Assembly (NCBI GenBank): GCA_002269645.1
Contig: NIVC01002283.1
Span: 42,871-106,870, forward strand
Direction of reading: 5' to 3'
Origin: Macrostomum lignano
Lineage: Eukaryota
Length of the DNA: 64,000 nucleotides
Part shown: positions 8,800 to 51,871 of the stretch, piece by piece
Layout: each line of letters opens with the position of its first letter
How positions within the stretch are numbered: the stretch's first letter is position 1
The notes under the pieces: generated by a model
Seen by the model: only the letters and a program-made list of their open reading frames with translations
Told to the model about the DNA's origin: nothing
The model's database searches: none
Program-made: the position numbers and the translations under genes

Positions 8800-9156
8800 G
8801 ATCGCTCATGAACAGCCTAGAGAATCGCTCATAAACAGCCTAGAGAATCGCTCATAAACAGCCTAGAGAATCGCTCATAAACAGCCTAGAGAATCGCTCA
8901 TAAACAGCCTAGAGAATCGCTCATAAACAGCCTAGAGAATCGCTCATAAGCAGCCTAGAGAATCGCTCGTAAGCAGCCTAGAGAATCGCTCATAAACAGC
9001 CTAGAGAATCGCTCATAAACAGCCTAGAGAATCGCTCATAAACAGTCTAGAGAATCGCTCATAAACAGCCTAGAGAATCGCTCATAAGCAGCCTAGAGAA
9101 TCGCTCATAAGCAGCCTAGAGAATCGCTCGTAAGCAGCGTAGAGAATCGCTCATAA
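8800..9156. repeat. 23-bp minisatellite (AGAATCGCTCATAAACAGCCTAG) about 150 bp upstream of the DEG/ENaC start codon
   Basis: About 15 tandem units read directly. Confidence 0.93.
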
Positions 9157-9309
9157 ACGAGGATTTTCTCCCATCTAAAGAAAGCCCCGCAGCCAATCGG
9201 GCGGGCCAGAGAGCCTCTCGCTGCAGCCTTTATCTGGCCGGCCGCTCTGCTCCTCTGCCCAGCACAACCTCGCGGCTTCCCGGCCGCCAAACCGCCAGCC
9301 GCAGTCGCC

Positions 9310-12986: not shown

Positions 12987-13553
12987 GATCTGTCAAACAG
13001 GCAGCCAAGCAGCATGGAGATTCCAGGAATAATTATGTACTAAAAGGCCGCCAGCAGCAGGTGCAAGGGCTCGCATTCGGGGTCAGCAAGCCACTAATTT
13101 TCGGCGGCGAAGTGTAGAAAGCGGGCGTCAGGAACGATTCCTGCCAACAGCAATCAAAAGAGAGAAAAGCTGGGATGGGAAGCGGAACTAGCGGGATCCA
13201 GCGCTAATGACCGATTGCAAGTGCGAGTTAATGTCTGGCCCTTGCATACCCTGGCGGTAATTCAGATAAAGCGAATGGACTTGAACAGTTTGTATCAGTG
13301 TCTGCTATTGCAGCCAGGAGTTCGGGCTGCCCGTGCACGCATCGAATGCCATTCAAGAGGCTGCAAGGAGCGGCGCGCACTTCTTGGCTGAGATGCACTT
13401 CGGGCCGCCGCATTCCATCGGCTGACTGCGGGAAAACTGAGAGGGAGACTTGAGGGGGGGTTAATCAAGTATACAGCAAGAGTGCTGCCGGGCTGTAAGG
13501 TTAGCTGGGCTGACAAATCGCTTAAGTCTCATGATCGCTCTGTGGCTGCTGCT

Positions 13554-14100
13554 TGTGACTGCATGAAGGTTGTGACTGCATGAAGGTTGTGACTGCATGA
13601 AAGTTGTGACTGCATGAATGTTGTGACTGCATGAAGGTTGTGACTGCATGAAGGTTGTGACTGCATGAAGGTTGTGACTGCATGAAGGTTGTGACTGCAT
13701 GAAGGTTGTGACTGCATGAAGGTTGTGACTGCATGAAGGTTGTGACTGCATGAAGGTTGTGACTGCATGAAAGTTGTGACTGCATGAAAGTTGTGACTGC
13801 ATGAAGGTTGTGACTGCATGAAGGTTGTGACTGCATGAAGGTTGTGACTGCATGAAGGTTGTGACTGCATGAAGGTTGTGACTGCATGAAGGTTGTGACT
13901 GCATGAAGGTTGTGACTGCATGAAGGTTGTGACTGCATGAAGGTTGTGACTGCATGAAGGTTGTGACTGCATGAAGGTTGTGACTGCATGAAGGTTGTGA
14001 CTGCACAGGAACTGAAGGCTGTGACTGCACAGGAACTGAAGGCTGTGACTGCACAGGAGCTGAAGTTTGACTGCACAAGACCTGGGGGTTGTGACTGCAC
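13554..14100. repeat. 17-bp minisatellite (TGTGACTGCATGAAGGT)
   Basis: Tandem units; source of the MQSQPSCSHNLHAVTTF ORFs. Confidence 0.95.
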
Positions 14101-15997
14101 AGTGACTGAACTTGTGAAAGCAGTAAGACTGTTGTCTTGCATGACACCAGACCATGAAGTTGCTGAACAGGTGCAGAGCTGCAAACATGGGAGAGGCCAA
14201 ATTCATTGAGGGTCTGACGGCAGTTGCAAAATAACCTACAGCAGCATTAGCAGCAGCACTTTTCGACTACTGCAGCACAGAAATTGAAACACACCGATAA
14301 AAAAGATGATGGAATGGCCCGTCCCAGCTGCCGCTGACATTTCCTGCTCTTCCGCGTCTTTTTGTGTCGCTAAAACTGTGCAGAACTGTACAAAATCTTT
14401 TGCTAGTTTTGAAAAAAAAATTAAAATCAGCAACTTCTCGCCATTAAACTTGAAGTTTTGTTAATCGTAACCTACTGGCTTGGCAACATCGGTGAGAGGT
14501 TCGAGTTCGCGTCTTCTTCAGCCCTGATTCCCTGTCAGCGGCAAAGCAACTTGGCGAGTTGAAGGCCTGTAGAAGTTTTTGTGCTGTGGGAACTTTCTGC
14601 GGGCTGTTGATCGAGGACGGGAGAAAACTATCAGTGCGGAGGCCGCCGGCTCGGGGGGGGGGGGCTGCAGCCACCTGCAGTTGCGGCTTCAGGAATTCCG
14701 CTGGCTTCCGCAGCTCTCTTATTCTTTTGCTTGTTTAATCCTCTTTGCAGGGCGTGTTCCGCAGGCTTGCTGGCAGCGGGGGGCATCGGAGCTGGAGTGG
14801 AGGAGGCGAATGCGGCGCTGCCCCCGCTCTACCGCTGCCTCTGCGGTTCGGGGTGGGAAGCCGGGCACGGAGTGAAAGTCGGACTTTGCCCCCAGAAGAA
14901 GATTTCGGCAAAGCCGCGCAGATAATGAACACTCGGCCTGCCTGCCTCTCCGGGGTCATTGTTGTGCCGATTCATTACCGGCAGCAGCTCATCCGGACCC
15001 AGCTGTCGAGTCTGCCAACGCCCGGGGTTAAAAAGTGCTCGAGCGATTCGCTGTCAGACAGCCCGCTGACAAGGCTGCCGGGGGTCTGCCTGGATGCTGT
15101 GCAGGATGCTGAGCGGGAAATGCAGCTTTGTACTATCTGGATCCGGCTGGGTCCAGCAAGTTGCTGCAGGGTGCGCCTGATTACTGTAAGTAGTATCCAG
15201 CGACCACTGGAAGAAACTAAGAGTCTCTCGACTTTGATTTTTGGAGAATTTCTACACTCGAAACTGGTGAGCAAAGAAGAATTCAAGCACAACATCTACA
15301 TGACGAAACAAAATTTAATCAAGCAGGGATGGAGAGGACTGTAAATCTAGTATCTGGAGTGCCAGCTCTGGTGGAGGCTCGGACCCGAGTAGGCTCAGAG
15401 GCTCGCTCTGCTAAACTGAAGGAGTTGATCGAGCGGGTGGAGGAAAATGATGAAGAGAGAGGAGAAAGAATATAGGGATCTAGCAAAAATTCTTCTCCTC
15501 CTTGCGGTGCATCAGTGCACAAGCCTCTAGTCTGGGGACATCTGTAGGCGGGACTTCCTTCAGGCCTTCCCTCCGCCAGACGATCAGGGTGACAGGATGC
15601 GTGCGACCTGCACCTCAATTCATTTCTGCGCAGAGCAGCGACCTTATTATTTAGATTTCTCTTAGCACCGCAGAGTTGAGAAGGCACCTTCTCTGCTCGG
15701 CTGCGATTATGAGAGAACCTGAGTGGATGAGTTGTGACAATCTGATTGTTGGCTGTAACAGGCTCCCATGTGCAGTGGCCCGACCAAAATGCTGAATAGC
15801 CCCTCTGATCGCAGCAGCGCCTCTCTGTGAAAGTCAGGACGGCCGCCCCCTTCCTGACCAGGTTTTGACTGTCCCCCATGGTCCCCATGGTATTTCCGTG
15901 GCTTTCCCTGCGGCAGAGTTCTCCCATACAAACGCATTGACCTATGTCTCACTAGGAGGCCCCATGGTTTTGTCATGAATGTAGGATTCATATATCG

Positions 15998-17052: not shown

Positions 17053-18330
17053 TTTCATAAGGACTTTAGTTGGCGGTTCTATATTTGCCAAATACACTTG
17101 TAACCCGTAACTAAAAATTGACTCGCGCAAACAGATAAGGCGAGCAAACCAACGCGAGCAGCCTTTAACCGGAGGGGGTGGGTGCGCGCGGACAGAGAGA
17201 CGGAGGGGGGAGGGGCGCGACGGAGGTCGAGAGAGTACACACGGAGTACAAAGCGGCCAGGGGGGGTCTTTCTCGAAAGCAACTTACGATCGGCCATAGA
17301 CGTAAGTTGGGAGGAAGTGCTTATGGCTTGCTCGAAAGTCTCGCAACTTGAAATGACGTACGATCGATCGCAACTTTGCGAGCTCGTAACTTTGCGCAAG
17401 ACTCTTTCTCGAAACGTTCGTATGTCTATGGTCTTTCGTAAGGTTGATCTTAACCCTAGACTGCTCGGTATCAGTCGTAAGAAGCACTTATCGGAAAGAT
17501 CTCAGGGTACGATATCTTTAATACTGCAAGTGACAGCAAAGATCATGGCGACCAAGCGTCAACCCAACTTCTCGCCTGGAGAAAAGGAAGAGTTGGTGAA
17601 TTACGTAAACAAGTACCTCGATACTATCAATTCTAAAGTCTGAGGGTGTGATTGGTAGTGATGTCCACGATATAGCGGAATGGGCGTTCGCGCCTTCCCG
17701 CTGTGTCCCCCCGGGACAGCCCTGCAGCTAAAATGTCCACAACTGGTGTGTTCTGTGATTTAGGGGTCAATGTGGAGTTGTGCGGGTTGATTGTCTACTT
17801 TAATTGCGTTGATCTGTTACGACTTTTAACTGTCAAGCCAAAAAAACTGGTTAACAACTGCTCGCGTTCTAAAACATTATAATCTTTTGCTTGTACATGC
17901 ATGTATTTCTTTTTACTTTCCTAAAATAAAATAAAATAAAACTGGTGCCCATTTCCTATTACTGTTAGTAAAAAATAAAGCAAGAAATCCATATAATTAA
18001 AATTAGCTTTTTAGATTTGATTTTTTGTCTTCTCTTCCATAGACAACATTTTATCGACTTAACTAGACTCACAAATCGCGTGAGTCACGCAAAGTCTAAG
18101 CGAGTTTCGAGTTTCGTTTGCGCTCCCCCTGCCTGGCCGCTTTGTACTTTCTCGCCCTCCGTCGCGCCCCTCCTCCCTCCGTCTCTCTGTCCGCGCGCAC
18201 CCACCCCCTCCGGTTAAAGGCTGCTCGCGTTGGTTTTGCTCGCCTTATCTGTTTGCGCGAGTCAATTTTTAGTTACGGGTTACAAGTGTATTTGGCAAAT
18301 ATAGAACCACTAACTAAAGTCCTAATGAAA
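17053..18330. mobile_element. Long-TIR (foldback/MULE-like) element, arms about 200 bp at high identity, interrupted by a Harbinger fragment
   Basis: 17053-17260 (TTTCATAAGGACTTTAG...GTACAAAGCGGCCAG) is the reverse complement of 18133-18330 apart from a few mismatches and an indel of about 11 nt. No TSD found. Confidence 0.8.
17261..17643 (+). mobile_element. PIF/Harbinger transposon 5' fragment with truncated Myb/SANT-like DNA-binding ORF (17545-17643)
   Basis: Peptide MATKRQPNFSPGEKEELVNYVNKYLDTINSKV matches the R-x-x-NFS-x-x-E-x-x-x-L start of Harbinger Myb/SANT proteins as recalled, not searched. It has repeated TACGATC sub-terminal motifs and is inserted after CAG. Confidence 0.65.
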
Positions 18331-19030
18331 GTCCTATAACGGGTTAGCAACTGCTACACCGCGAGAGATCGACAAACTGTTGCGGTACTTTTATGGTACC
18401 CTTCGCAAGCGGGATGGCGATTATTTTGCTCCGGCCACGTTGATTTGCATTTGAGCTGCCCCTCTACTGGAATTTTATGTCGACAAGACGCATCAATCAA
18501 TATTCTGATGATGAATTCTATACGCTTCCAATGCCACACTAAAGTCAATGGGCAGAATTTTCATTGCCTGAGGTGGACGCGTCCGACACTTCTAGTCTAT
18601 CGAACCTGTCGACATGAAGAGGCTGTCTGACTACGAGCTTCTTTAGTCGGAAATCTCCAGAGGGTGCTATTACGCGGCCGTTCCGCTATCGTTTTCTTCC
18701 TTATTATGTTAATGACTGTACGTTTTATTATCATCACATTATTAATACTACTCGTATCTTTAAAACTACACTAAATATACCGCCTTCATATTGGTTTCCG
18801 TGCATTGAATGCGTTGATGCACGCTAGTTTACTATTGTTGAAATCTTGCGTTTGATGCGCACACGATAAAGAATACATTAAACACGCTCCAGCGTGATAC
18901 AATGTGTTGTAGTGATTATGCGAGTCAGTGCACTTTCCTACGCCGGGCCGGTCTGGCCGTCCTCCCCCCTCTGACTCACCCCACTTTCACTACTGCGCGT
19001 GTGTACCCCCTTACCCCCCTCTGCCTATTC

Positions 19031-19290
19031 TCACTAGGAGGCCCCATGGTATTTCCATGGCTTTCCCTGCGGCAGAGTTCTCCCATGCAAACACATTGAT
19101 CTATGTCTCACTAGGAGGCCCCATGGTATTTCCATGGCTTTCCCTGCGGCAGAGTTCTCCCATGCAAACACATTGATCTATGTCTCACTAGGAGGCCCCA
19201 TGGTATTTCCATGGCTTTCCCTGCGGCAGAGTTCTCCCATGCAAACACATTGATCTATGTCTCATTAGAAGGCCCCATGGTATTTCCGTG
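19031..19290. repeat. 77-bp tandem repeat (about 3.4 copies) upstream of the methyltransferase; dispersed relatives at about 15866-15970 (+) and 20972-21020 (-)
   Basis: TCACTAGGAGGCCCCATGGTATTTCCATGGCTTTCCCTGCGGCAGAG... starts at 19031, 19108, 19185 and 19262. Confidence 0.9.
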
Positions 19291-19464
19291 GCTTCCGTGT
19301 GGCAGTGTAGCCGGAGCGCCGCACGATCGTCTCGGATTGTGCATGAATTGCGGCGCGTTAGTCAACAGCTAAATTTAGCATTCCCACAGGCCCATTTATA
19401 CGAGCGTAAAAGACCGCGTAAAAAAACAGCTTATACCTGCATAGCAAGTCACTAAAATTTCAAG

Positions 19465-20241
19465 ATGGCATACAGCTCCAATTACGAGAACTGGCAGCAG
19501 GAGCACAACAAGGACCGACTGGACTACTACCATCAACAGGAGTTCCGAGACTCATACACAAAAGAAATGGTACGAAAAGCTCTGGGCTGCTACAGATGCA
19601 TCGCTTCTGAGGTAAAAGGTCTCTTCCACTGTTTGGGTGCCAGAATGATGAACCAGAACTGGCCACGGCTGCCAGTGCCTCAGCTCAGCCTCAGAGTCCT
19701 GTCTCTGGGCTCGGGACCCGGCACAGACCTATTGGCTGCCGTCAGGGCCTTCGCCGACGCGTCTGCTGGCGCACCGCTGGAGATAATCTGCACCGGAGTA
19801 GATTTGGCGTCCTGGGACATGAAGCCTTTTGAAACAGAAGTAAATCAGCTCATGGCTATGTGCGAATCAAATATTGCTGTCCACTGGACTATGTACAAAG
19901 GAGACTGTGCCGACTACGTGAGGTACTGCATCGAACACGGAGTGCAGTTCGATCTGGTAATTTCCAGCTACGCCCGGGCGGTAGACAAGATCGAGCTTCT
20001 GGGCCAGGCCGTGCCGCAGATCCTCAGCCTCGGAGGTCGGATTTTCGTTATCGATAACTGCAGTCCTAAACTTACAAATGAACTCAAGGAGCATGGCTTC
20101 TATGTGTCTCAGCCTAGTTATGATAGACGCCCAATTTTTCTTGTAAAAATTCGTAGTATCGAATGTATTAAAAATGTATTTAATGTACCCCCAAATGCTG
20201 TTTACAAGTACATGTATAAACCGAATATCAACCACGCCTAA
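19465..20241 (+). CDS. Class I SAM-dependent methyltransferase-like protein, intronless, 258 aa, substrate unknown
   Basis: Motif I LRVLSLGSGPGTD, acidic end of beta-2 (CTGVDL), GDCAD, FDLVISSY, LSLGGRIFVID; intact ATG-to-TAA ORF. Confidence 0.8.
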   Translation: MAYSSNYENWQQEHNKDRLDYYHQQEFRDSYTKEMVRKALGCYRCIASEVKGLFHCLGARMMNQNWPRLPVPQLSLRVLSLGSGPGTDLLAAVRAFADASAGAPLEIICTGVDLASWDMKPFETEVNQLMAMCESNIAVHWTMYKGDCADYVRYCIEHGVQFDLVISSYARAVDKIELLGQAVPQILSLGGRIFVIDNCSPKLTNELKEHGFYVSQPSYDRRPIFLVKIRSIECIKNVFNVPPNAVYKYMYKPNINHA

Positions 20242-21479
20242 TACTATAGTTATATTTATTATATTATTAATACTGTTTTTAGTATTTTACTATTATTAGT
20301 AAGGTGGATTTTCCAAACTGTATGATCAAATGTTTTTATCCAGAAGGTGACGCTGTCAAGCTTGAATGAACGCTTGCAGCATCACCGAACTCTTCTTTCT
20401 GCTTAACTCTGCATCAAAACAATTCGCTGTTGAAGTAGCTTTTTATGCGCGTCGTTCTGTTCTTGTTAATTATGCTTACTGAGAGGTTAATAGCGAAGTT
20501 AGTTGCTAAACTTCTAATATCTGCACTAGCTCCATCCGGGTATATTCATGCAATGCTTGTCTTGCAAAATCTAACAACTTCATCATTAATATAAAAGTCG
20601 CAACAGTCTCCAACTGCAAATTATCCAGCAGCTCAGCAAATCCCTGAGTCTGGTGCTCGGCACGTGTTTCGGTGTTAAAAAATATTTGTTAATTTTCTAA
20701 AATAATTTCCTAGAGTAGTATAGGGTCCTCTCGTTGTTCGAAGCAGGCTCTGTGGAAAACCACAGCCAGCTCCATCCACAGGTGGATGTTTGAAGCCGTA
20801 GAGAGCTATTATTAGATTAGAGAAATATGGAACCAAAAAGCTCCGTACAAATCGCACACACCGAGTACAGGGGAGTTCATCCGAAGCATTCTTATTGGAT
20901 GAGAGACAACTGGACTGCACATGAGGAAACCTCTCTTGGGGAACTTCCCTCATTGGCAAGCCCCGGAGCGGCGCAGGGAAAGCCGGCCATGGGGGAATCC
21001 ATGGGAAAACCAGGGAAAAGTTAAAACTTTTTCTTCTGCTGGAAGATACGAGTTTAGGAAATTTAGATATAGAAGTGCAAGAAAAGAATGTTACCACTTG
21101 AAGTAAGAATAAGACGAGCCTTCAGAAGAAAGTGCTAGGTAAGATCTATCGGAAGTTTGAGGAGAATGAGGATCAGAGAGTGAGTTGTGAGCACGGAAGC
21201 CATCACCATTATAGGCTTGTGGATAGTTAGCAAAAAATTAAAAGACGTGTCTAAAGACGATTTGAATAAGAGATTTAACAAGTTAAATACATCAGTCGAT
21301 TGTGTTTCAAATGCAAATCGATATTCCACTTATTGTCCACCAAACTACTTAAAGTAATAAGCAAAGTTTGTTCTAAATAAATTAGATAAGAAAAATGCTC
21401 TCCTGTTAAACAACTTTTTGGTTTTTTACATTTTCTAAATTATTCTCGAGTCGTGTCTAACTCATCCCTAGAGTAGATT

Positions 21480-21945
21480 GTAACTCACCCAAATCGTGTG
21501 TAACTCACCCTGTGTCTAACTCACTTCTAGAGTGTCTAACTCACCCTTAGATTAGTGTCTAACTCACCCCTAGAGTGTCTAACTCACTCTTAGATTAGTG
21601 TCTAACTCACCCCTAGTGTGTCTAACTCACTCTTAGATTAGTGTCTAACTCACCCCTAGAGTGTCTAACTCACTCTTAGATTAGTGTCTAACTCACCCCT
21701 AGTGTCTAACTCACCCTTAGATTAGTGTCTAACTCACCCCTAGAGTGTCTAACTCACTCTTAGATTAGTGTCTAACTCACCCCTAGTGTGTCTAACTCAC
21801 TCTTAGATTAGTGTCTAACTCACCCCTAGTGTCTAACTCACCCTTAGATTAGTGTCTAACTCACCCCTAGTGTGTCTAACTCACCCTTAGATTAGTGTCT
21901 AACTCACCCCTAGAGTCGTGTCTAACTCACCCTTAGAGTCAAACT
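21480..21945. repeat. Minisatellite with alternating 18-20 bp and 23 bp units (GTGTCTAACTCACCCCTA[GA] / GTGTCTAACTCACTCTTAGATTA)
   Basis: Higher-order dimer of about 43 bp read directly. Confidence 0.9.
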
Positions 21946-22484
21946 CAGTGTTAGAGTCGCGTTCACCGAACTTAAAGCTTGTAATGTTAAATCCATATAA
22001 TAAAAATGGTCTGTCGGTATCCAGGTAGGTATGTGATCGATTTTAGCAAAACCGGCTCAACCGATTTTCTTCGAACTTGCGAATTGATCAGCCATAGCAT
22101 TCAAATTCATATTCGACTCTAATTATCTAGAGTTAATGCTTAACATTTCTTAAGACTGCGAAGTTCGTAAGTCAACGAAAAGCAAAGTATAAAATCAGAT
22201 GAACATAATTAAGTCTACTTGTTCTGAGGCACTAATGTGAGTTAGACAATGACATGTACTTGAGAATAGCATGCAAGTGTACTGCAAATACGGTCGTATG
22301 ACAGGAATGCGAGTCACATGTAGCTCGTACATGTAATTTAGCTAACGCGTCAGGTTGCCGCCACTCCAGAGCTGGTTAATGCCGCGTGTGCAAACGGACA
22401 ACAGATAGTGACTAGCGAAAGTGTCACACGTGTTCAGTCACTCAGTGTGCAAGCCTCACTGCACTTGCAGAGTCCTCCCTCATC

Positions 22485-23294
22485 TCACATGAGTGAACAG
22501 GTCCACCTGCCCAAGAACCCGGTCTCGACAGTCTCTGCAACATCGCCAGTCAGCTCAGGAGACTCCTCGGGTACCGCTTCAAGACCGTAATTAGTATTAT
22601 TTGTCACCTTAGCCGGGGTCACCAGCACAGCTTCCGCCTGTTCAACATCCTCGGCTTTGTCCGCTGCCTGAGCCTCACCAAGTGGCCCCTCCGACACCTG
22701 GAGCTGCGCTGTCCCTCGGCTCGCTGCCAGCCAGGCTTCTCCCAGGCGCTGCACCAAAAGACTCAGACGTCGCTGCCGCTCCAGCTCGATTGACTGGTCC
22801 GGCTCCCCAGACTTGTCCTCGCCTTCGACTTCGTCCAGCGGCCGCAGCTGACGCCAGGCACTTTGCAACCGCTGCAGAGCGCTGTCGCCTCCGCCGTGCA
22901 ATTCGTTGAGATCGAGGCTGTGGGGTCGCTGGCGCCACATGTCCACCACTACGCTGTGAAACTTAGCCTTCTCCACCTCGGAGAGCTGCAGCTGGCGGCC
23001 CCGCTGGCGCTGCAGGCGCAGCAGCCGTACGGTGTGCTCGCTCATCTCGCTGTCCGTGTCGCCATTACTGGGCAGCGGCGCCCGGGCCAGATAGCAGTTC
23101 AACAGCTTGGCCACCAGCCAGCCGCAAAGGGCGGCGCAAACCATGATTGCCACGGTCACCACCAGACGGAGCGAGGTGGTAGCATTCGGGAGCCGAGTCG
23201 GGTTCATCGGAACGCTGTTATTGACAGCTGCGCCGGCCAGCCAGCTTCCATTCACGGCGGCGTCAACTGCAGAGAGCTGCATGGAGATGCCCAT
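22485..23294 (-). CDS. Orphan single-pass membrane protein, 269 aa
   Basis: Non-repetitive GC-rich ORF; short N-terminal part with NGS/NNS/NAT sequons, TM LVVTVAIMVCAALCGWLVAKLLNCYLA, helical/acidic cytoplasmic tail. No family recognised. Confidence 0.55.
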   Translation of the reverse strand: MGISMQLSAVDAAVNGSWLAGAAVNNSVPMNPTRLPNATTSLRLVVTVAIMVCAALCGWLVAKLLNCYLARAPLPSNGDTDSEMSEHTVRLLRLQRQRGRQLQLSEVEKAKFHSVVVDMWRQRPHSLDLNELHGGGDSALQRLQSAWRQLRPLDEVEGEDKSGEPDQSIELERQRRLSLLVQRLGEAWLAASRGTAQLQVSEGPLGEAQAADKAEDVEQAEAVLVTPAKVTNNTNYGLEAVPEESPELTGDVAETVETGFLGRWTCSLM

Positions 23295-23857
23295 CCAATA
23301 ATTCCAACAATTCTGCAGGCGCGGCCTCTTGCCGTTTGCTTTTCTCTCTTAGCCTGAGGCATTTGCTTATCTCACTTGCCACCCCACCTCCACCCCCTCC
23401 TCAGTAACTCTGAATGCGCAGGCGTCGCATCTGGCCTGTCAGCAAACAATGGGAGGACGGCAGGCAGAGGCAGAGACCCCTGCGACCAGTGTCACCATTA
23501 ACAGCCGAATAACTCACTCAGCACAGCGCTCGGGTGTGTACAGTGCTTGCAGGTTTAGCCACCCCAGTGTCCCGATGCTAAGCTAATTCATGTCAGCTCG
23601 GAGTGGTCAGTCGCGCTTCTGCGCAGCTGTAGAGTGCAGAGGCGGGTACACACAACCTAATTGAGCACACAGCATCAAGGGAAATCCGAGGACAGTTTGC
23701 AGTGACTCAGTGAGTCCTACGACTTATTCATCCCGATCATGTCGCGGGTGCTGGTATACAGTAGATTCCTAAAGTATGTCTACATGTGGCTCGAATGGTC
23801 CTGGATGCCACCCACCTGTTATTAAAGGCAAAAATGGCAATCAAGCTGATGATCTAG

Positions 23858-24225
23858 GAAGATGAAGGACCAAGCTGACGATCTGGGAAGCTGGAGGACC
23901 AACATGACGATCTGGGAAGCTGGAGGACCAACCTGACGATCTGGGAAAGTGGAGGACCAACCTGACGATCTGGGAAGATGGAGGACCAACCTGACGATCT
24001 GGGAAAGTGGAGGACCAACCTGACGATCTGGGAAGGTGGAGGACCAACCTGACGATCTGGGAAAGTGGAGGACCAACCTGACGATCTGGGAAAGTGGAGG
24101 ACCAACCTGATGGTCTGGGAAGCTGGAGGACCAACCTGACGATCTGGGAAGCTGGAGGACCGACCTGACGATCTGGGAAGGTGGAGGACCGACCTGACGA
24201 TCTGGGAAGGTGGAGGACCAACCTG
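23858..24225. repeat. 29-bp minisatellite (GGAGGACCAACCTGACGATCTGGGAAAGT)
   Basis: About 12 tandem units. Confidence 0.93.
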
Positions 24226-24784
24226 AGGCGCTAGATGGCAGTTTCAAATTATTACATGTAATCTACCCGACCATATAAATGAAATAAAAAATATGATTAA
24301 AAAGGTTTTATTCAGTCATGTGTATCCATAATCGTTGCGGATCTATTTTTTGATGTGAACAGAAAAAATAAACAAATCGCTGACCTGTCGAGTACAAAAA
24401 GGTGTTAAAGCGTCAACAGGCGCTACTAGGGACGAGCTCACATAGTAGAGTTTCAAACTCGAGGGAATGAGAAGGAAAACACTGGAGCGGGATTCTGGAG
24501 TCTCTGCAAGTTGAATCGGACTGGAATAGTAACGCAGCGCAAACCGGACTGGCACAGAACATTGCTGGAACAAGAACAACTCTAACTGTAGTAGGCTTTG
24601 GAAACTTTGGAGACAGGGTGACAAGATGGGCGAAGAGGCAACCAGGGAATAAATTAGCAGCAACAAAATTCGGTACAAAAGCGCCGCAATGCACTCTAAT
24701 GGAAAACCAATGTCGAATCGCGATAAGTCGCATTCAATGGGCCAACCAACCTAAACAGTTTCATGTGACACCGAGTACTTTTGT

Positions 24785-25852
24785 TCAGGCTGAATCACCG
24801 CTGGCCCCGGCGGCTTTCGGGGCCTCCTCCGCCTTCTTCACCGGGTTGATGTACCGGAATGAGAACGTGTAGCTCGTGCGACGGGCCATCGGATCCTTGG
24901 GAATCCGGTGGATGTACAGGTCCTCGATCGCGCCCTCCGTGACCACCAGGTCTCCGTGAGCAGAGCGCAGTCTCACGTAGCGATCCTCGCGCCCCTTTCT
25001 CGAGAACTCCAAGTACCTGGCCTGGCCCAAACTCACAGCCGCAATGTACGGGTGCTCACCAAGCGGCTTCTCTTTCTCGCAGTGCCACCCAAGGCTGTCC
25101 CTGCCGTTGCGGTACATGTAGCAAATCACTGCGTTGAACTCCCGCCCAACCGCCTTCTCTACGATCTCCTTCAGGTCCTTCAGCTTCGGGTTCCAGTCGT
25201 TGCAGTTCTCGAACTTGTTGCCAGAATACTCAAAGTCAGGACCGACATAGCAGGTCAGGCGAGGCTCCTGACGCTCCTTGCCATCTTTTGTTGTCGAAGT
25301 CAGCTGCTTCCACGACAGATCCTGCTTCAGACTCTCCATGAAGTTCTCACCGACAGTCCGGTTCAAGAAGCTCGGCATGAACGAGATGCACGCGTGCACC
25401 CCGTCCTTGGTCCTGTCCAGCTGGTAACTGCCAGGCAGGTTGATCTCCACAGGTCCATGGGCCATGTACATCAGCTGCAGCAGATTGATCTGCGGCAGAC
25501 CAGCAATGCTCGACTTTCCTGACTTCTGAACATCACCGTTGCCACCACCACCAGCATTCGTCACTGCCTTGGGCTCACTAGCCGGCTTGTCCTGGTTGTA
25601 AGTCTCATCAAACACAATGGCAATGTTTTCCTTCACGTCCTTGCTTGGGTGCCAGATCTGCAAGTGCTCCTCAATCACCTTGTCTGAGTTGGTGATCATG
25701 CCGCACTGCTTGCACTTGTTCAGCTTCACGTGGATCCTGCAGTTGTGCTCCTTCAGGTGGGCATCTAGAGACGCCACCTTCAGCGTCATGAACTGGCACT
25801 GAGGACAAGCCAGGATCAGGATCTCAGAGGCATCAATCGGGACTTTCTCCAT
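24785..25852 (-). CDS. Double C2H2 zinc finger + AlkB-family (ALKBH2/3-like) 2OG-Fe(II) dioxygenase-fold protein, copy A, 355 aa
   Basis: CPQC-x12-H-x3-H and CKQC-x12-H-x4-H fingers; ALKBH3-like QEPRLTCYVG, WNPKLKDLK, FNAVICYMYRNGRDSLGWH, IAAVSLG, L..GDLVVTEG, HRIPK. Confidence 0.88.
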   Translation of the reverse strand: MEKVPIDASEILILACPQCQFMTLKVASLDAHLKEHNCRIHVKLNKCKQCGMITNSDKVIEEHLQIWHPSKDVKENIAIVFDETYNQDKPASEPKAVTNAGGGGNGDVQKSGKSSIAGLPQINLLQLMYMAHGPVEINLPGSYQLDRTKDGVHACISFMPSFLNRTVGENFMESLKQDLSWKQLTSTTKDGKERQEPRLTCYVGPDFEYSGNKFENCNDWNPKLKDLKEIVEKAVGREFNAVICYMYRNGRDSLGWHCEKEKPLGEHPYIAAVSLGQARYLEFSRKGREDRYVRLRSAHGDLVVTEGAIEDLYIHRIPKDPMARRTSYTFSFRYINPVKKAEEAPKAAGASGDSA

Positions 25853-25992
25853 CTTTACGTCGAATCTGTAATTGGATGAAGCAAATAACCTTACTGCGTT
25901 GTTATGCGATTAATATATCGATGGTAGTTTAAATGCCAATAGGCAAACTGCTTTTAAATGCCTGTGCCATTGCGACACAGAAACTTTATTAA

Positions 25993-26305
25993 ACTTCAGG
26001 GTCCTGCTTAGCTACAGCCTCTGCATAACACTTCAGGGTCCTGCTTAGCTACAGCCTCTGCATAACACTTCAGGGTCCTGCTTAGCTACAGCCTCTGCAT
26101 AACACTTCAGGGTCCTGCTCAGCTACAGCCTCTGCATAACACTTCAGGGTCCTGCTTAGCTACAGCCTCAGCATAACACTTCAGGGTCCTGCTCAGCTAC
26201 AGCCTCAGCATAAAACTTCAGAGTCCTGCTTAGCTGCAGCCTCTGCATAACACTTCAGGGTCCTGCTTAGCTACAGCCTCAGCATAACACTTCAGGGTCC
26301 TGCTT
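25993..26305. repeat. 37-bp tandem repeat (ACTTCAGGGTCCTGCTTAGCTACAGCCTCTGCATAAC), about 8.5 copies, upstream of copy A
   Basis: Tandem units read directly. Confidence 0.93.
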
Positions 26306-27196
26306 ATGGAACCATGTTCTACCGCAAAATAAACAACACAGAAATGCGACGCGCTTAAACCAGGACTGTTTCCTATTTTATTGCAAGATCCAACATCTTC
26401 AAAACAGCGATTCCAAAATGAGCCAACGCTAATAAATTGAGGCGCAAACCGATAGCGCGCTAGCGAGGCGCCAAGCGGTCGGCGTCTCACACGAGCCGGG
26501 CTCCGCTACAGCGGATATTATTAGAACAAAAACTATTTAGTAGTAGAAAACTCCCAATCGCAATGATCAGAGATTGGGTAGGAGCGCGCGACTACACACA
26601 CAAATGTACTTTAATTTAGCAAGCTAAAAATTGCAGAGAACAGACCCAAAACGGGTACTGGAAGCTGATTGCAGCTGTGGTTGATTTATTAGTCTCTTAT
26701 TGATAATATTGCGCAACAGACCTGCATAGAAAAAACAAGACCCGAGTCAGCCACCAGGCCAGCTCACTAGCAAACAAAAGCGAACCTTAAAGTTACGATT
26801 GATAAATAAAAAGCGACAAAGCTGAGAATTTCTGAATACGGAAAAACAATTTAGTACATTGAATGGATAGTTGCAGCGACTCATAGGTGGCCAGGGAGGA
26901 ACAGTCCTGCTTCTTGACTAGCGTGCGACCTGTTGCTTAGTAATATTGAAGGCAATGAGAGGACGCAAACCAACTTACTAAGTAATTCAATAGAAAAACA
27001 GAAAATGGAGCTAACAAAAAAGCGTATAAAGAAAATGAAGATTGCTTAACTTTATTAATAACTTTGAGGATTTATGCTTTTGTTCAACAACTAGCTCGAC
27101 TGTCAAAACTTATCTTTAAACAACAAGCAAGCGAATTAACAAAACACACCGGCAGCTCAGCAGTCCGCAGCATCCGGCAGGGCCGACCGGCACCGC

Positions 27197-28393
27197 TCAC
27201 TTCTTCTTGCCTTTGCCGCTGCCCACCGGGCCGGGGCTCTTGCCCTTCTTGCCAGCCGGGGTCGCGGAGGTCTCCTCAGTGGCAGCCGGCTCCGCCTTCG
27301 GAGCCTCGGCCGGCTTCTCCGACGACTCCGGGGCGGCCTTGGCCGGCGCCTCGGCGACCTTCGGGGCCTCCTCCGCCTTCTTCACCGTGTTGATGTACCG
27401 GAATGAGAACGTGTAGCTCGTGCGACGGGCCATCGGATCCTTGGGAATCCGGTGGATGTACAGGTCCTCGATCGCGCCCTCCGTGACCACCAGGTCTCCG
27501 TGAGCAGAGCGCAGTCTCACGTAGCGATCCTCGCGCCCCTTTCTCGAGAACTCCAAGTACCTGGCCTGGCCCAAACTCACAGCCGCAATGTACGGGTGCT
27601 CACCAAGCGGCTTCTCTTTCTCGCAGTGCCACCCAAGGCTGTCCCTGCCGTTGCGGTACATGTAGCAAATCACTGCGTTGAACTCCCGCCCAACCGCCTT
27701 CTCTACGATCTCCTTCAGATCCTTCAGCTTCGGGTTCCAGTCGTTGCAGTTCTCGAACTTGTTGCCGCAATACTCAAAGTCAGGACCGACATAGCAGGTC
27801 AGGCGAGGCTCCTGACGCTCCTTGCCGTCCTTTGTTGTCAAAGTCAGCTGCTTCCACGACAGATCCTGCTTCAGACTCTCCATGAAGTTCTCACCGACAG
27901 TCCGGTTCAGGAAGCTCGGCATGAATGAGATGCACGCGTGCACCCCGTCCTTGGTCCTGTCCAGCTGGTAACTGCCAGGAAGGTTGATCTCCACAGGTCC
28001 GTGGGCCATGTACATCAGCTGCAGCAGATTGATCTGCGGCAGACCAGCAATGCTCGACTTTCCTGACTTCTGAGCATCACCACCACCAGCAGCATTCGTC
28101 ACTGCCTTCTTAAGCTCACTAGCTGGCTTGTCCTGGTTGTAAGTCTCATCAAACACAATGGCAATGTTTTCCTTCACGTCCTTGCTTGGGTGCCAGATCT
28201 GCAAGTGCTCCTCAATCACCTTGTCTGAGTTGGTGATCATGCCGCACTGCTTGCACTTGTTCAGCTTCACGTGGATCCTGCAGTTGTGCTCCTTCAGGTG
28301 GGCATCTAGAGACGCCACCTTCAGCGTCATGAACTGGCACTGAGGACAGGCCAGGATCAAGATCTCAGAGGCATCAATCGGCACTTTCTCCAT
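27197..28393 (-). CDS. Double C2H2 zinc finger + AlkB-family protein, copy B, 398 aa, with Ala/Glu/Pro/Lys-rich tail ending GKGKKK
   Basis: Near-identical to copy A from the start codon to VKKAEEAPK, then a different C-terminus. Confidence 0.88.
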   Translation of the reverse strand: MEKVPIDASEILILACPQCQFMTLKVASLDAHLKEHNCRIHVKLNKCKQCGMITNSDKVIEEHLQIWHPSKDVKENIAIVFDETYNQDKPASELKKAVTNAAGGGDAQKSGKSSIAGLPQINLLQLMYMAHGPVEINLPGSYQLDRTKDGVHACISFMPSFLNRTVGENFMESLKQDLSWKQLTLTTKDGKERQEPRLTCYVGPDFEYCGNKFENCNDWNPKLKDLKEIVEKAVGREFNAVICYMYRNGRDSLGWHCEKEKPLGEHPYIAAVSLGQARYLEFSRKGREDRYVRLRSAHGDLVVTEGAIEDLYIHRIPKDPMARRTSYTFSFRYINTVKKAEEAPKVAEAPAKAAPESSEKPAEAPKAEPAATEETSATPAGKKGKSPGPVGSGKGKKK

Positions 28394-29178
28394 CTCAGAG
28401 CATGCACAATGAAGAGTTGGACATTTGACAATTGTTCTGACTTATATTTTTTAAATATAATTTGTGTTACAATTAATAAAGCTATTTTAAACAAAAACAC
28501 TAGGAACAAAATTATCTAGAAATAATCAATTGAGAATTTTTTTCATATTCATTCAATTTCAAATATATTTTATTTTTGCCATATCAATATAATTTGCACT
28601 TACCTATTGTATGTTTCTATTGCCAAAAATTTATCTTGAGTCATATGATTTTAACTATGTAACTATAAATGTCTGTAGAATATTTAGCAAAAAATTACTA
28701 TAAAATTTATAACTTCTATTATTATAACTTATATACTCTTCTAATACATATCTAATACTGTTTGAAACAAGGATAATTAGGTAGATAATATTGTAAAATA
28801 CTTTTTTTAAATATTATTCAAAGTTCTAACTTGAGATTCCTAAAAATAATGTAATAAACAAAAAAATTTGCTATAAATTACTTAAAAAACTAAAATAAAA
28901 CATATATATTAATAAATTGTTATAAATAAAGAAAGATATCTATGTATAGAAGATAAGATAATATATAAAAACTTACTTTTAAGAATTTTTAGAATTCTAA
29001 AAAACATTTAATTTAATAAGCCTTATTATAAAGTCTATAAAAGTCCAAAATTAAAAATTATTTTTTAAATAATAATCAATTTTAAATTTTTTTCAATGTC
29101 TTAAATATTTAAAAAGTGAGACAAACTTCCTTTATTAATAAATTGAATATAATTACTATTTAGTTAATTTAAGTTTGG

Positions 29179-29620
29179 CAGTTATTATTTGTCCAGTGAC
29201 TGGACGAATAGCAATGTGGTTATTTGTCCGGTTACTGGATCCTGACCATGCTTTCTTATTCATCCGGTTAATACCGGACAAATAGACATTTTGTTATTTG
29301 TCCAGTTAAATTGATAATGCTAAAATGTCTAGTTTATAAAAACCATAAGGGTAAATATTCCTAGACTTCAAAGACTTTTTACTTGTGTATTGATTATTAT
29401 ATTGTTATACTTGTGTGTGTCTTATACACTAAAATATGCCGAATTGAATACACTGCTTTGCTTACACTCAAGTAATATAAGAAAATATTAATCAGTATAT
29501 GAGAAAAGGTCTTAGGCTAAAAGTCTAGAATATTTATCACGAAACAAATAAGACATTTGTGTTAGCAATTTAAATATTTAAATTTAAATATTTGTCCGGT
29601 CACCGGACAAATAACAACTG
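29179..29620. mobile_element. MITE of about 440 bp with about 32-bp imperfect TIRs in an AT-rich island
   Basis: CAGTTATTATTTGTCCAGTGACTGGACGAATA versus the reverse complement of TATTTGTCCGGTCACCGGACAAATAACAACTG; internal TTATTTGTCC sub-repeats and a hairpin. No TSD match. Confidence 0.7.
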
Positions 29621-31459
29621 ACTTTAAGTTTTAAACTGTTTTATTTATTACATTATAAGTTTGTTACAAAAAAACCTTCTAAGCAAAAACTAGAGTAAAA
29701 CTAAAGGCTGAGAACTTTTATTAAAATAAAAAATGTACATTATAATTTTTTTCAAGATTATCAACAGAAACAATGTGTTATATTATCTAAGAATAATAAT
29801 TAATTTAGAATAATTTGGAAAGAAAAAAGCCATGAAATGTGTAATATAATAACTAGATAAAGAATCTAAAAGGCCTGATATCTACATGAATATAAGGCTT
29901 TATTTTTTGTTTTTCAATTTGCCCAAAGGGGATGTTGATAAGCAATAGTTAGGGGCTTCAATGCATTAAAAACTGTTTTTTTATTTCAAACACATTGAAA
30001 TAAGCCCTTGAAGAAAATTTTTGTTTTAAGAACTTTGTTTTTAGTCAGTCCTACTCCTAGACCTAGCCTCATTTATGAAGAGGGCCGGGATTGCCTACGC
30101 AGGTCTTAACAGAAAACTCAGAATTTTGACATAGGCCCTAGTGGTTAATTTAACAGAAACGAACGTTCTTACAGTGAAAAGAAAAATTAAAATTTAGGTT
30201 TAGGTCTATTATGATCTCAATCTCAATTTGTTTAACCTTCGTTTAAGCAGGCCAAGGGCAGGGCTTTACGTCAACTTGTCATTAGCATAAAAAGGCTATT
30301 AATGTTGCATACAGTCCGAGTCATGCACAGGCAAACAGTCAGACTTCCTGAGGGTGGAACAAACAAATAATTTTTTTTATATTAAGGTTTTGTTTCATTT
30401 AAATATTTTTTCGTTTTAGCGTTAGATTTGAACAATTTTTTAAGCAGTAAAATAAACTGCGTAATTTTCACATGTACGCTGCTCAATTTTAAAAGCCGCT
30501 TTGTAAAAATAGTAAGTAAAATTAGACAAAAAAGAAATTTATAAGAATGGAACACATGAGCAACAATAGTATCTTGTTGACGGTTGCATTAAAAACTCGT
30601 AGGTTTGTATAAAACTATAAACAGTACCAGCATACCAGCACATATCAGTTTCTGAGATTTTTGTCAATGTAACTAGAATTTACCTAGAATTAACACTGAA
30701 TTTCGTACCCATTGTATGACGAAATACATGCAATGTAAAAGTCTTCCAGGTTCAGTGTACGAAGTCTCGATGGGTTTTTTAGTTGAAGGATGGGAGCTGC
30801 TGTGTACATAATGTACATTCTGGCGCACCCTTTAAGGCGATATTTTAAAACAACCAGTGAGATGCATTACTGCCTATTCCTCCGACTCCCCCTCAGCGAA
30901 GCACGTACATGCACATGCAATCGCGTGGATTATACGTGTACACGCAGTTAAATTAAAGCTAGGCACACACTCGAGCTCACGTGCACAGGGAGTGTACAGC
31001 GACCCTAACTTTATAGTTGGACATGTACACTTCAAAGTGCCTTTAATTGGGGATGGCCATCAAAGCCGTTGTACGAGCAGACCCAAGCTGAGATTCAAAT
31101 TAGGCCCCAAATTAATAATGGAGTAGCTGCACTTGCAGAAATCGAGTCTCCATATGGCCTATTGGCACACATGTAAGAGCGCCGCGCTGAACCAAAATGT
31201 AAGTAAAGAAATATGCCCAGTTAAACCAACTGAAAATTTGTAGCAACACAAGTCTTTTCAGTACGCTTTGTGGCACATTTATTTTGCAATTTCTCACAAA
31301 TTGTCAAAAGGTTCACGAATGGATGCACATGTACATACAGGATGTAAATGAAACCCGCTGGTAATCTACGAAAGCTGTTTCAACATGTGCTTTTGCAACG
31401 AAGACTTAGAGTTTCTTCATGGCGAGAATGTCATCAAAGTATAGCGTAGCCCACAGTTC

Positions 31460-32583
31460 CTAAAGCTCGTTGTGCTCCCAACGACTGGCCTTCGTCAGCG
31501 TACGAGCTCTTGTCGATGCTAGGAAGTAGCGCGTTTCGACGTCGTTTTCGACGATTCGATCGATTCCGGCTAAGTGCTGCGTAGCCCCCACCAAACCGCC
31601 CATTTCGCTGATAAACTCGGGGGCCACATCGGGTGCGATGGCCAGGGCGACTCGTTTCTTCAGTGCCCAATGCAAAATCGCGGTTCGAATCGGCAGCCTG
31701 GCGTCGGCAGCGGCCAGCACCAGACGGGCATCGGTCAGCAGCTCCTGTGCGTGCGGCCCGCCAAGGGCTTCGTCAGCCAGGAGAACCACCGAGTGCTGGT
31801 GGCACCAACGGCGCAGCACCCGGTGCCGGTGATGCGGGTTGAACGCCGCCTGAACGACAGTCAGGAAGTTGACGTTGCCGGCAGCGCGGCGCATGGAGTA
31901 GGCGGTGTGCATGCTGACCGGACCCTTCCCAGTTCTACGCGGCTTCTGCTTCTTCGTCTGCGTCTGCGTCTTCTTCTGCGTCTTCTTCTTCTGCGTCTTT
32001 TTCTTCTGCATCTTGTTGTTCTTCTTGGCAGCCTTCGCCGTCGGCTTTTCGCCTTTCCGACGAACGAACTGAAGCAGCGCGCGACAGCCCGACCGGCCGG
32101 GGAAGTCGAGGCACTCCGGAGTGGACATCCGGTGCAGCTGCGCCACCGCCGGCAGCGGGTAGTTGCGGACGCCCAGGTTGAGAATGCGGCGCTTCTTGGC
32201 CAGGCGCAGCAGTGTGCGCCAGTTGCGCAGGAAGGCGGGCGTCAGGCGGTTCTTCCCGCAGGCCAGCCGGTCGCGCTGCGAGTGGCCGCACGGCCGGCCG
32301 GAGACGAGCAGCAGGTCCAAGTAGGCGGTGCCCAGCAGCTGCAGGATGCGGAGGAAGCGCTGGCCGGTGAAGCGCTTGGCGGAGTGGCGCAGGCTGACGC
32401 CGATGAACACGCGCCGGCGGCTCGCCTGGTCGGCAGTTTTGAAAACCTCGGCGAAGTCCCGCAGTAGAGTCTCATCCTCGGCGGGCAGGATGACGGCGCG
32501 AAGCTTTGAAGCCGCTTCAAAAAAGGTCGCTTGATGCTGCGCCTGATGAAACCCGTCTTCGTACTGCAGCATCACGGCAGGGA
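31460..32583 (-). CDS. Aldo-keto reductase-like protein (large 3' exon), catalytic residues apparently lost, Lys/Gln-rich insertion
   Basis: AKR-like segments YLDLLLVSGRP, W..L..L...RRILNLGVRNY, VVQAAFNP...LRRWCHQHSV...ALG, LLTD..L..., AILHWALKKRV. CCCGCAG acceptor just upstream (plus-strand 32584-32590). 5' exons uncertain. Confidence 0.7.
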
Positions 32584-32594
32584 CTGCGGGATTA

Positions 32595-32795
32595 GCGGCA
32601 TGTCGGAGAGGGGATAAAGAGGATTGTGGGGAAGCGGCATGTCGGAGAGGGAATCCAGAGGATTGTGGGGAAGCGGCATGTCGGAGAGGGGATCCAGAGG
32701 ATTGTGGGGAAGCGGCATGTCGGAGAGGGGATCCAGAGGATTGTGGGGAAGCAGCATGTCGGAGAGGGGATCCAGAGGATTGTGGGGAAGGGGCA
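32595..32795. repeat. 39-bp minisatellite in the putative intron upstream of the AKR-like exon
   Basis: GCGGCATGTCGGAGAGGGGATCCAGAGGATTGTGGGGAA, about 5 copies. Confidence 0.9.
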
Positions 32796-33036
32796 TGTTG
32801 AAGAGGCGATCCTGATGACTGGGATTCAGTCCAATTCTGATTTTCACGAGCGGAGCACCTCCAAGTTTAAATCTCGAGACCTCTGATTGAAAGCAATCCG
32901 ACACTGAGCAAACGTCCCTAATCTGATAAAAGTCCTGTCCCAGCTGGACCCTGTTGCTCTGCTGTGAATCTGATTCAGGCAGTGTACGAGCAACGGTAAT
33001 TGCTTGCTTCTCAGTCTGGCTTTGCGTTTAGACTGA

Positions 33037-33237
33037 CTGCTCATCCCTGACTGCTCATCCCTGACTGCTCATCCCTGACTGCTCATCCCTGACTGCTCAT
33101 CCCTGACTGCTCATCCCTGACTGCTCATCCCTGACTGCTCATCCCTGACTGCTCATCCCTGACTGCTCATCCCTGACTGCTCATCCCTGACTGCTCATCC
33201 CTGACTGCTCATCCCTGACTGCTCATCCCTGACTGCT
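33037..33237. repeat. 14-bp minisatellite (CTGCTCATCCCTGA)
   Basis: About 14 tandem units. Confidence 0.93.
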
Positions 33238-33252
33238 CCGTCCCAAACTCAC

Positions 33253-33418
33253 CCACTCTGTTCCTCCTGACGCAGAACGCGTGGTCACTTAAAAAGCGGC
33301 TCCCCGTGCCGGCCTCCTCGCCCCTGTAGATGGCCGCCAGCAGGGCGTCGCCGGGACCCGCCAGAGCCGCCAGCAGGCCGCTGAGCAGCAGCAGAGGCCG
33401 GGCACCGAGCTGACTCAT
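33253..33418 (-). CDS. Signal-peptide-encoding exon, possibly the first coding exon of the AKR-like gene
   Basis: MSQLGARPLLLLSGLLAALAGPGDA... followed by a G|GTGAGT donor at 33252 that leads into a minisatellite. Confidence 0.5.
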
Positions 33419-33736
33419 TCTATTGCTCGCGAAGGACTGAGCAAGTGGAGAATTTCGGAGATGCTTCGAAAGAGCCGGACTCTCATTGAAAGCCTCTCTA
33501 TTGGGGTGGGCGCGTGGCGATTCCATTGTGCTGCGTGCGTGCAAGACGGCCGCCATGGACAATGGGAGCTGCGCTGCGCCGACTGGTGGGTAGACAATAC
33601 GGGCTGCGGCCTGCCTGCCTGGCCCGCATTGGCCATACATTCAGCCTCTGAAGATTCGCACCAGTTGCCATTGTGTATACCAGCGTACATGTACACAGTA
33701 ATGATGTGCTTGACAGCACGCTTTTGTGTTTGTGTT

Positions 33737-34286
<550 letters not shown>

Positions 34287-51793: not shown

Positions 51794-51871
<78 letters not shown>

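Follow-up and report, generated by a model that had tools for sequence, protein, structure and literature searches.

Two zinc finger-AlkB genes in tandem

The 64-kb stretch of Macrostomum lignano nuclear DNA analyzed here (hereafter, the window; positions 42,871 to 106,870 of contig NIVC01002283.1, assembly GCA_002269645.1) carries, on its minus strand, two tandem genes encoding proteins that combine a pair of C2H2 zinc fingers with a domain of the AlkB family. Both genes are intronless, uninterrupted open reading frames (ORFs), copy 1 at window positions 24785-25852 (355 amino acids) and copy 2 at 27197-28393 (398 amino acids), exactly where an earlier note on this DNA, made from the sequence alone, had placed a tandem pair. 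The two proteins are 97% identical across 346 amino acids, and no third copy of the gene was found within the 64-kb window. An exact-sequence look-up found neither protein on record; the best protein match, at 98% identity, is the public gene model BOX15_Mlig024840g2. A second locus of the same assembly (L003, on contig NIVC01000625.1) contains an orthologous ORF for each gene, namely, a 398-amino acid ORF at 10007-11197 for copy 2 and a 354-amino acid ORF at 13474-14532 for copy 1.

From the N-terminus to the C-terminus, the copy 2 protein consists of zinc finger 1 (residues 16-36; 28286-28348, minus strand, as are all gene features below), zinc finger 2 (residues 47-68; 28190-28255), a Gly/Lys-rich linker (residues 89-113; 28055-28129) that is predicted to be disordered (predicted local distance difference test score, pLDDT, <50 in the AlphaFold2, AF2, model), an ALKBH3-like double-stranded beta-helix domain (residues 119-335; 27389-28039) and a basic, low-complexity, Lys/Ala/Pro/Glu-rich tail (27197-27388) ending GKKGKSPGPVGSGKGKKK. 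Copy 1 has the same domains, with the fingers at 25745-25807 and 25649-25714 and the ALKBH3-like domain, located by the PF13532 match and the motif positions, at 24845-25495; it lacks the basic tail and ends in a short, unrelated one. Most of the indels and replacements that separate the copies fall within the linker.

The fingers have the ligands C16-P-Q-C19-x12-H32-x3-H36 and C47-K-Q-C50-x12-H63-x4-H68 in each copy, and all eight zinc-ligand positions are invariant among five homologs with only 28-40% identity. A family profile (A3) built from the first 90 residues finds, among proteins of solved structure, the tandem C2H2 fingers of BCL11A (E-value 4e-9), CTCF (3e-7) and ZHX1 (1e-6). The AF2 model contains the beta-beta-alpha elements of classical C2H2 fingers, with short strands at residues 14-15, 22-23 and 53-54, a strand at 40-47 that reaches the start of finger 2, and helices at 26-35 and 57-67; the confidence of the model in this region is moderate (pLDDT 66-82), with finger 1 modeled as a beta-hairpin and a helix at 66-74 and finger 2 at about 80. 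Judging from the ligands, the profile and the model, these are genuine classical C2H2 fingers. The Pfam finger models, applied in a single-sequence scan of the window protein, yielded no match above the threshold, so that an architecture search relying on Pfam only would overlook the fingers.

The second component is recognized by the Pfam profile PF13532 with scores of 51.7-53.7 bits (cut-off 31.2) and is predicted with high confidence (pLDDT >93). Among relatives of solved structure, the closest in sequence is human ALKBH3 (E-value 6e-29), followed by ALKBH2 (∼5e-8) and Escherichia coli AlkB (∼7e-3); the comparison of predicted folds with Foldseek gives the same order for the human proteins, with ALKBH3 (8jnk) matched at a template modeling (TM) score of 0.94 and a root-mean-square deviation of 1.8 Å and ALKBH2 at a TM score of ∼0.83. 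In a rough neighbor-joining tree, the window genes cluster with named metazoan ALKBH3-like proteins. The AlkB domain is of the ALKBH3 type and closest to human ALKBH3, compared with the earlier assignment to an ‘ALKBH2/3-like' group; the family membership stands, with an active site that departs from the canonical one (see below). The fusion of two C2H2 fingers with an AlkB domain in both copies, also proposed in the earlier note, is borne out by the motifs, the invariant ligands, the finger profile and the PF13532 match.

Human ALKBH3 (ABH3; PDB 2iuw, 8jnk, 8jnr and 9ncz), the best sequence match with ∼32% identity over ∼200 residues, is an Fe(II)/2-oxoglutarate (2OG) dioxygenase whose substrates in single-stranded DNA and RNA are 1-methyladenine and 3-methylcytosine, which it removes. 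Unlike the window proteins, it has only a disordered N-terminus, without fingers or a basic tail, according to the alignments of the solved chains; the absence of C2H2 fingers agrees with the earlier note.

The fusion is rare in public protein space and belongs to a small family that is not limited to this pair. An HMMER search that exhaustively covered 1.84 billion representative proteins produced 4,219 AlkB-type matches; among the best 150 of these, which were examined for fingers, C2H2 motifs were detected in only five clusters (P0001, P0003, P0004, P0005 and P0007). This is a lower bound on the occurrence of the fusion given this sample and the splitting of eukaryotic exons by gene callers, for example, in P0004. 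Three of the five clusters are paralog groups of M. lignano, and the other two come from environmental contigs (ENA). Word-indexed homolog searches were started from a single protein, from the full-length family alignment A1 and from the finger alignment A3. Their only matches were M. lignano proteins, exon 1 of one environmental gene (L001) and two finger-less AlkB-domain proteins on ENA/JGI contigs (P0002 and P0159); they returned no finger-bearing protein from any other named organism. In the rough tree, one clade unites the window genes with P0003, P0004 and P0005, and P0007 lies outside; this finger clade is nested in a cluster with the named metazoan ALKBH3-like proteins (from a sea cucumber and a bryozoan) and other sequences.

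The two environmental genes, P0004 (L001, ENA ERZ25070786) and P0005 (L002, ENA ERZ3792534), share with the window genes the finger pair (LILNCPACRFMTLR...), the linker motif TYN-DKP and the ALKBH3-like domain; their identity to the window genes in the full-length alignment A1 is 44% for the reconstruction of L001 and 36% for the ORF of L002, and 52% and 38%, respectively, in the AlkB-domain matches. They differ in having a third C2H2 finger, at the position of the Gly-rich linker of the window genes, and canonical active-site motifs (HSDDE with RINFTFR in L001 and with RVNFTFR in L002); the reconstructed L001 gene has two introns, and L002 has a comparable K/E/S-rich tail. The P0007 cluster of M. 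lignano (Mlig015948/016819/021096; ‘Fe2OG dioxygenase domain-containing protein' in UniProt) has the two-finger module ahead of an ALKBH3-like domain, and its finger ligands are spaced exactly as in the window proteins, but it is only ∼28% identical to the window proteins overall, has a long Gln/Gly-rich linker and retains a canonical active site (HSDNE and RINLTFR). The existence of finger-bearing relatives with canonical sites implies that the fusion predates the change of the active site and that the window genes lost the third finger. M. lignano also encodes finger-less canonical ALKBH3-like genes (P0006/P0154 and P0013).

A relative with the altered active site is Mlig021122 (P0003; locus L004 on contig NIVC01000499.1), which begins with two C2H2 fingers and has the same unusual motif variants, WHCEKE and RRTSY(A)FSFR. 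Unlike in the window genes, its fingers (only 35% identical to those of the window proteins) are followed by a gap that contains a retroelement and then by a degenerate AlkB-like domain that precedes the domain with the HCE motif. The gene model (6010-10139) joins the two-finger exon to an ORF at 8508-10139 that encodes both the degenerate domain, which is devoid of the HxD motif, and the HCE-type AlkB domain; the retroelement in between (6347-8022) encodes a reverse transcriptase and RNase H. Mlig021122 may be a fused former tandem pair. Two other proteins, P0051 and P0094, carry an ALKBH3-like domain with a broken metal motif (WCSLQH and WHTHDQ, respectively) at the C-terminus of a longer protein, which in P0094 (943 amino acids) includes a long N-terminal helical-repeat region; they may represent another lineage of non-canonical AlkB fusions.

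No published description of a C2H2-ALKBH3 architecture was found in the literature search. The architecture, which the earlier note did not recognize from characterized proteins, is rare, but it belongs to a family with canonical members, and other fusions of the ALKBH3 clade, to PHD, SAD/SRA and AT-hook modules, have been reported in other eukaryotes (Iyer, Zhang and Aravind 2016, PMC4738411). Those fusions follow the same principle; C2H2 fingers are not listed among them, and they are discussed as candidate demethylases of 6-methyladenine (6mA) in DNA with canonical sites. Hence, the principle of joining ALKBH3 to a DNA-binding module is known, and the C2H2 version is new as far as found. 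The window genes are a genuine, lineage-restricted variant of the ALKBH3 family in which a new fusion and a conserved, non-canonical cofactor site come together; they are neither an artifact nor a new kind of system.

The altered active site and its conservation

The active-site residues were compared in an ungapped alignment to human ALKBH3 and the closest relatives, with the numbering of copy 2 and with conservation counted in 149 of the best relatives. Six functional positions of ALKBH3 are kept: both metal-site histidines (human His191 and His257, here His256 and His314), Tyr181 (Tyr246), Arg275 (Arg332), and the equivalents of Arg131 and Tyr143. Five are changed: Asp193 to Glu258, Asn179 to Tyr244, Arg269 to Ser326, Asn271 to Thr328 and Thr273 to Ser330. 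The first of these changes converts the HxD metal motif of the family into HxE, in the context W-H256-C-E258-K-E (27614-27631 in copy 2; 25070-25087 in copy 1). Asp occupies this position in 145 of the 149 relatives and Glu in only two; HxE is also found in another AlkB relative, P0129. Because a carboxylate is retained, metal binding by the site formed by His256, Glu258 and His314 is plausible.

At the place of the RxNxTxR motif of the family, the window proteins have RRTSYTFSFR (27398-27427 in copy 2; 24854-24883 in copy 1), where Ser326 corresponds to the first Arg and Thr328 to the Asn, and the last Arg (Arg332) is kept, as it is in 139 of the 149 relatives. This last Arg is conserved across all nucleic-acid oxygenases (PMC3985658). 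In a large MAFFT alignment, Arg324 takes the place of the first Arg by means of an insertion of two residues, which gives a spacing of eight instead of six; this solution is less parsimonious, given that the spacing from the His257 position to the motif is identical in the closest relatives and in human ALKBH3. Nucleotide recognition by ALKBH3 involves Arg131, Tyr143 and the RED motif at 122-124 (PMC10816986). The RED motif is T-K-D in the window protein, and Arg145, Asp189 and Asp194 are replaced by Gly, Gly and Lys, respectively; substrate selection probably differs from that of human ALKBH3. The co-substrate pocket is altered relative to canonical ALKBH3, and with HxE and Tyr, Ser and Thr at the positions of Asn179, Arg269 and Asn271, that is, at the 2OG and metal site, the label of a nucleic-acid demethylase, one of the two functions proposed in the earlier note, is not safe.

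The altered site does not appear to be a product of decay. The C-terminal AlkB domain of Mlig021122 is 89% identical to that of the window proteins in amino acid sequence and retains all three characteristic motifs, WHCEKE, CYMYRNG and RRTSY(T/A)FSFR. At the DNA level, second codon positions of the two domains are 95% identical, compared with only 45% for third positions; the nonsynonymous divergence (dN) is ∼0.095, and synonymous sites are saturated, so that the synonymous divergence (dS) is undefined under the Nei-Gojobori method (NG86; proportion of synonymous differences, pS, >0.75) and the codon-position identities were used instead. The persistence of the same motifs in a paralog despite synonymous saturation indicates that purifying selection has long maintained the variant domain. 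A pseudogene is ruled out by the dN/dS-type comparisons together with the codon-position identities. The N-terminal part of P0003, where the degenerate AlkB-like domain has wholly lost HxD, provides a contrast and, with it, a weak argument that the domain of the window proteins still needs its metal site.

The comparison with Mlig021122 is stronger evidence of selection than that between the two copies, on which the claim of purifying selection had originally been based. Over their whole length, the copies differ by 13 synonymous and 13 non-synonymous codon differences. Outside the linker and the tail, the recount gives 11 synonymous and 3 non-synonymous ones (S186L, S210C and P337T), close to the original estimate of about 10 versus 3, and so few replacements would be improbable if the sequences evolved neutrally (binomial p ∼1e-5). 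Selection between the copies is thus supported, with the restriction that, the coding sequences evolving in concert, the copy-to-copy dN/dS reflects only the time since the last homogenization, that is, recent history.

Possible modes of action

The single most likely interpretation, which we adopt tentatively and which is only narrowly ahead of a non-catalytic binder, is that the two genes are functional, selectively maintained paralogs of a flatworm-restricted ALKBH3 branch in which the AlkB domain would be an oxidase with a remodeled pocket. The finger module, assisted in copy 2 by the basic tail, would hold the protein on a nucleic acid or on a partner protein, and, thanks to the flexible linker, the ALKBH3-type domain would be able to reach an alkylated base in single-stranded DNA or RNA and flip it into its pocket, which keeps the base-binding residues of ALKBH3 (the Arg131 and Tyr143 equivalents). 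The metal center made of His256, Glu258 and His314 would then oxidize the alkyl group; the binding of 2OG would presumably be weaker than in canonical AlkB enzymes, or of another kind, on account of the Asn to Tyr244, Arg to Ser326 and Asn to Thr328 replacements, for which Arg324 might partly compensate. In favor of retained catalysis are both histidines, the carboxylate, and the Tyr181, Arg275, Arg131 and Tyr143 equivalents, as well as the contrast with the degenerate domain of P0003 and the occurrence of HxE in P0129.

Several observations weigh against this interpretation. The Asn179 position, occupied by Tyr244 here, is Asn in 140 of the 149 relatives, and the first Arg of RxNxTxR, replaced by Ser326, is kept in 139 of the 149; the motif is broken in the window proteins under either alignment. 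The PF13532 match of the window protein ends at profile position 173 of 194, before the RxNxTxR site, compared with canonical relatives that match through position 194. The replacement of the equivalent Arg in FTO (R316Q) reportedly abolishes activity. The two His-containing motifs, HxD and H, and RxxxxxR comprise the only invariant AlkB positions, and the first Arg coordinates 2OG in all AlkB homologs (PMC544882); in ALKBH5, the equivalent Arg together with a Tyr binds the C5-carboxylate of 2OG, and the Asn binds the C1-carboxylate (PMC3985658). On the side of the fingers, the inter-finger linker consists of 10 residues (NCRIHVKLNK) that do not resemble TGEKP and include a predicted strand that pairs with residues 77-85 in the AF2 model, and the helix positions -1, 2, 3 and 6, read from the alignment, are K-A-S-A and S-K-V-E, with few typical base-contacting residues; these positions vary between homologs. 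With so few base-contacting residues and a linker of this kind, sequence-specific binding of double-stranded DNA by the fingers seems doubtful.

The simultaneous loss of three near-invariant co-substrate contacts (Asn179 to Tyr, Arg269 to Ser and Asn271 to Thr) is what would be expected if the domain were a non-catalytic pseudo-enzyme, a ‘reader' in which the AlkB fold serves as a pocket for a flipped, possibly methylated, base without turnover of 2OG, the fingers and the tail contribute affinity, and the protein binds, shields or recruits. This explanation also accommodates the retention of the base-binding Arg131 and Tyr143 equivalents, the strong purifying selection, which indicates that the altered site is functional, and the example of P0003, where this lineage has kept an AlkB-like domain that is completely dead. 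It leaves unexplained why the three metal ligands (with a conservative Asp to Glu change), Arg275 and Tyr181 are retained, given that nothing would preserve them in a pure binder, and Arg324, two residues upstream of Ser326 and on the same face, might stand in for Arg269. Furthermore, the sample is small, and at 11% divergence from the paralog, chance conservation of seven residues is not improbable. On the whole, we regard a purely binding role as quite possible, although we give it less credence than catalysis by a remodeled oxidase. Because the pocket changes cluster at the contacts with the 2OG carboxylates and the metal site is kept, the domain could, alternatively, be an active oxygenase that uses another co-substrate, such as a different 2-oxoacid or an ascorbate-type reductant, or none; equally, the T-K-D sequence in place of RED and the Gly, Lys and Gly in place of Asp189, Asp194 and Arg145 would fit a substrate unlike 1-methyladenine and 3-methylcytosine, such as a different modified base or the side chain of a protein. 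Nothing speaks positively for any one of these alternatives, and several of the substrate-pocket differences are ordinary, Gly being the commonest residue at position 189 (96 of the 149 relatives), so that this variant appears improbable. To our knowledge, no member of the AlkB family that uses an alternative co-substrate has been described.

The suspicion that the pair is an artifact, either mis-assembled alleles of one gene or a young non-functional duplicate, draws on the highly duplicated nature of M. lignano assemblies and on the partial, frameshifted public gene model for the locus (P0001). It is countered by the unrelated flanks and different C-termini of the copies, by the presence of both copies, intact, at two loci that differ by 3-5% and by the strong under-representation of replacements in both copies, and we consider it very unlikely. 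The possibility raised in the earlier note that the copies are uncollapsed alleles of a single locus fails on the same facts, each copy having its own flanks and C-terminus and the same pair recurring in the colinear L003.

It may also be that an ALKBH3-derived domain without canonical 2OG binding has been conserved under strong selection either as a finger-guided reader or sensor, for bases that carry alkyl or methyl groups, or as an oxidase whose co-substrate is not 2OG; we consider this a credible conjecture, with the balance somewhat against it, and, if true, AlkB proteins would have a mode of action that is not known from the family. The family is the paradigm of the direct repair of alkylated bases and of demethylation in RNA and DNA, and the targeting of its members is under active study. 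In human ALKBH3, targeting depends on partner proteins; the C2H2 fusion offers a self-targeting version of such an enzyme. A family with both canonical and altered-site members is available here in one tractable flatworm, M. lignano, for which transgenesis and RNA interference have been developed. The altered members offer a clean test of whether the AlkB fold can do without its ‘invariant' 2OG-binding Arg and Asn. Should this be the case, the rules by which AlkB homologs are called active or dead need revision; otherwise, the window genes represent a conserved pseudo-enzyme derived from a repair oxygenase.

Probable homogenization of the copies and genomic surroundings

The DNA similarity between the two copies is confined to two blocks, 24804-25854 in copy 1 and 27348-28395 in copy 2, which are 97% identical, start 2 nt upstream of the ATG and end near codon 349; the flanks are unrelated and cannot be aligned. 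A 24-kb stretch of L003 is colinear with window positions 18000-34000 and 95-97% identical to it, including the intergenic DNA; both genes are intact there as well, and each has the same tail as its counterpart in the window. Given that intergenic DNA is still so similar between the two loci and the flanks of the copies cannot be aligned, either the duplication is old or only the coding sequence was copied. In the core of the four sequences from the two loci, no sites are fixed between the paralogs, compared with 25 singletons, 2 sites that differ by locus and 1 crossed site; all sites diagnostic of the paralogs lie at the block borders. The dS between the paralogs is 0.046-0.080, and that between the two loci is 0.049-0.053.

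The best reading of this pattern is that gene conversion, restricted to the coding sequence, keeps the copies ∼97% identical, in which case the locus would be a compact example of conversion stopping at the edges of the coding sequence. A recent duplication of the size of the coding sequence, with breakpoints that by chance coincide with its edges, would account for the blocks as well and, as a point against conversion, retains a residual probability. A retrocopy is unlikely because the homology leaves out both untranslated regions (UTRs) and ends inside the coding sequence. The GC content of third codon positions is 0.80 in the window genes and 0.50 in the L004 paralog (27389-28039 compared with L004 9414-10130); this contrast may stem from a GC bias of gene conversion between the tandem copies or from unequal expression.

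The homology starts right after an AG, 2 nt before each ATG (...cgtaaAG followed by ATG at 25853-25880 and ...ctctgAG followed by ATG at 28394-28420). M. lignano uses spliced-leader trans-splicing, and these AGs could be trans-splice acceptors giving near-leaderless mRNAs.

The unique spacer between the genes (25855-27196) includes the 3' UTR of copy 2, with an AATAAA ∼150 nt past the stop codon, a 37-nt minisatellite (25993-26306) and the upstream region of copy 1. This array has ∼8.5 units in the window and occupies ∼1.2 kb in L003 (12089-13322), a size difference that indicates a rapid change of array length. Including it, six minisatellites surround the pair, at 21512-21937, 23842-24226, 25993-26306, 32594-32812, 33033-33238 and 33739-34286, with periods of 43, 29, 37, 39, 14 and 4 nt, respectively.

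The public model BOX15_Mlig024840g2 (L003 10001-14347) is a 292-amino acid ‘partial' protein with a frameshifted tail (…AAVIWARPGTWSSRERGARIAT), and its range spans both tandem genes. The L003 DNA itself holds two intact ORFs, for 398 and 354 amino acids, so that the public annotation of the locus is wrong.

The 269-amino acid ORF directly downstream of copy 1 (22485-23294) has no Pfam match. Other neighbors in the window encode a fragment of an ASC/ENaC-type channel (9618-11156), the C-terminus of a P-type cation ATPase (50995-52257) and a SNAP/DUF4106-like ORF (6739-8238); none of the neighboring ORFs has an obvious functional tie to the AlkB genes. A bacterial or viral origin of the DNA is ruled out by the animal genes in the window and by the M. 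lignano contigs.

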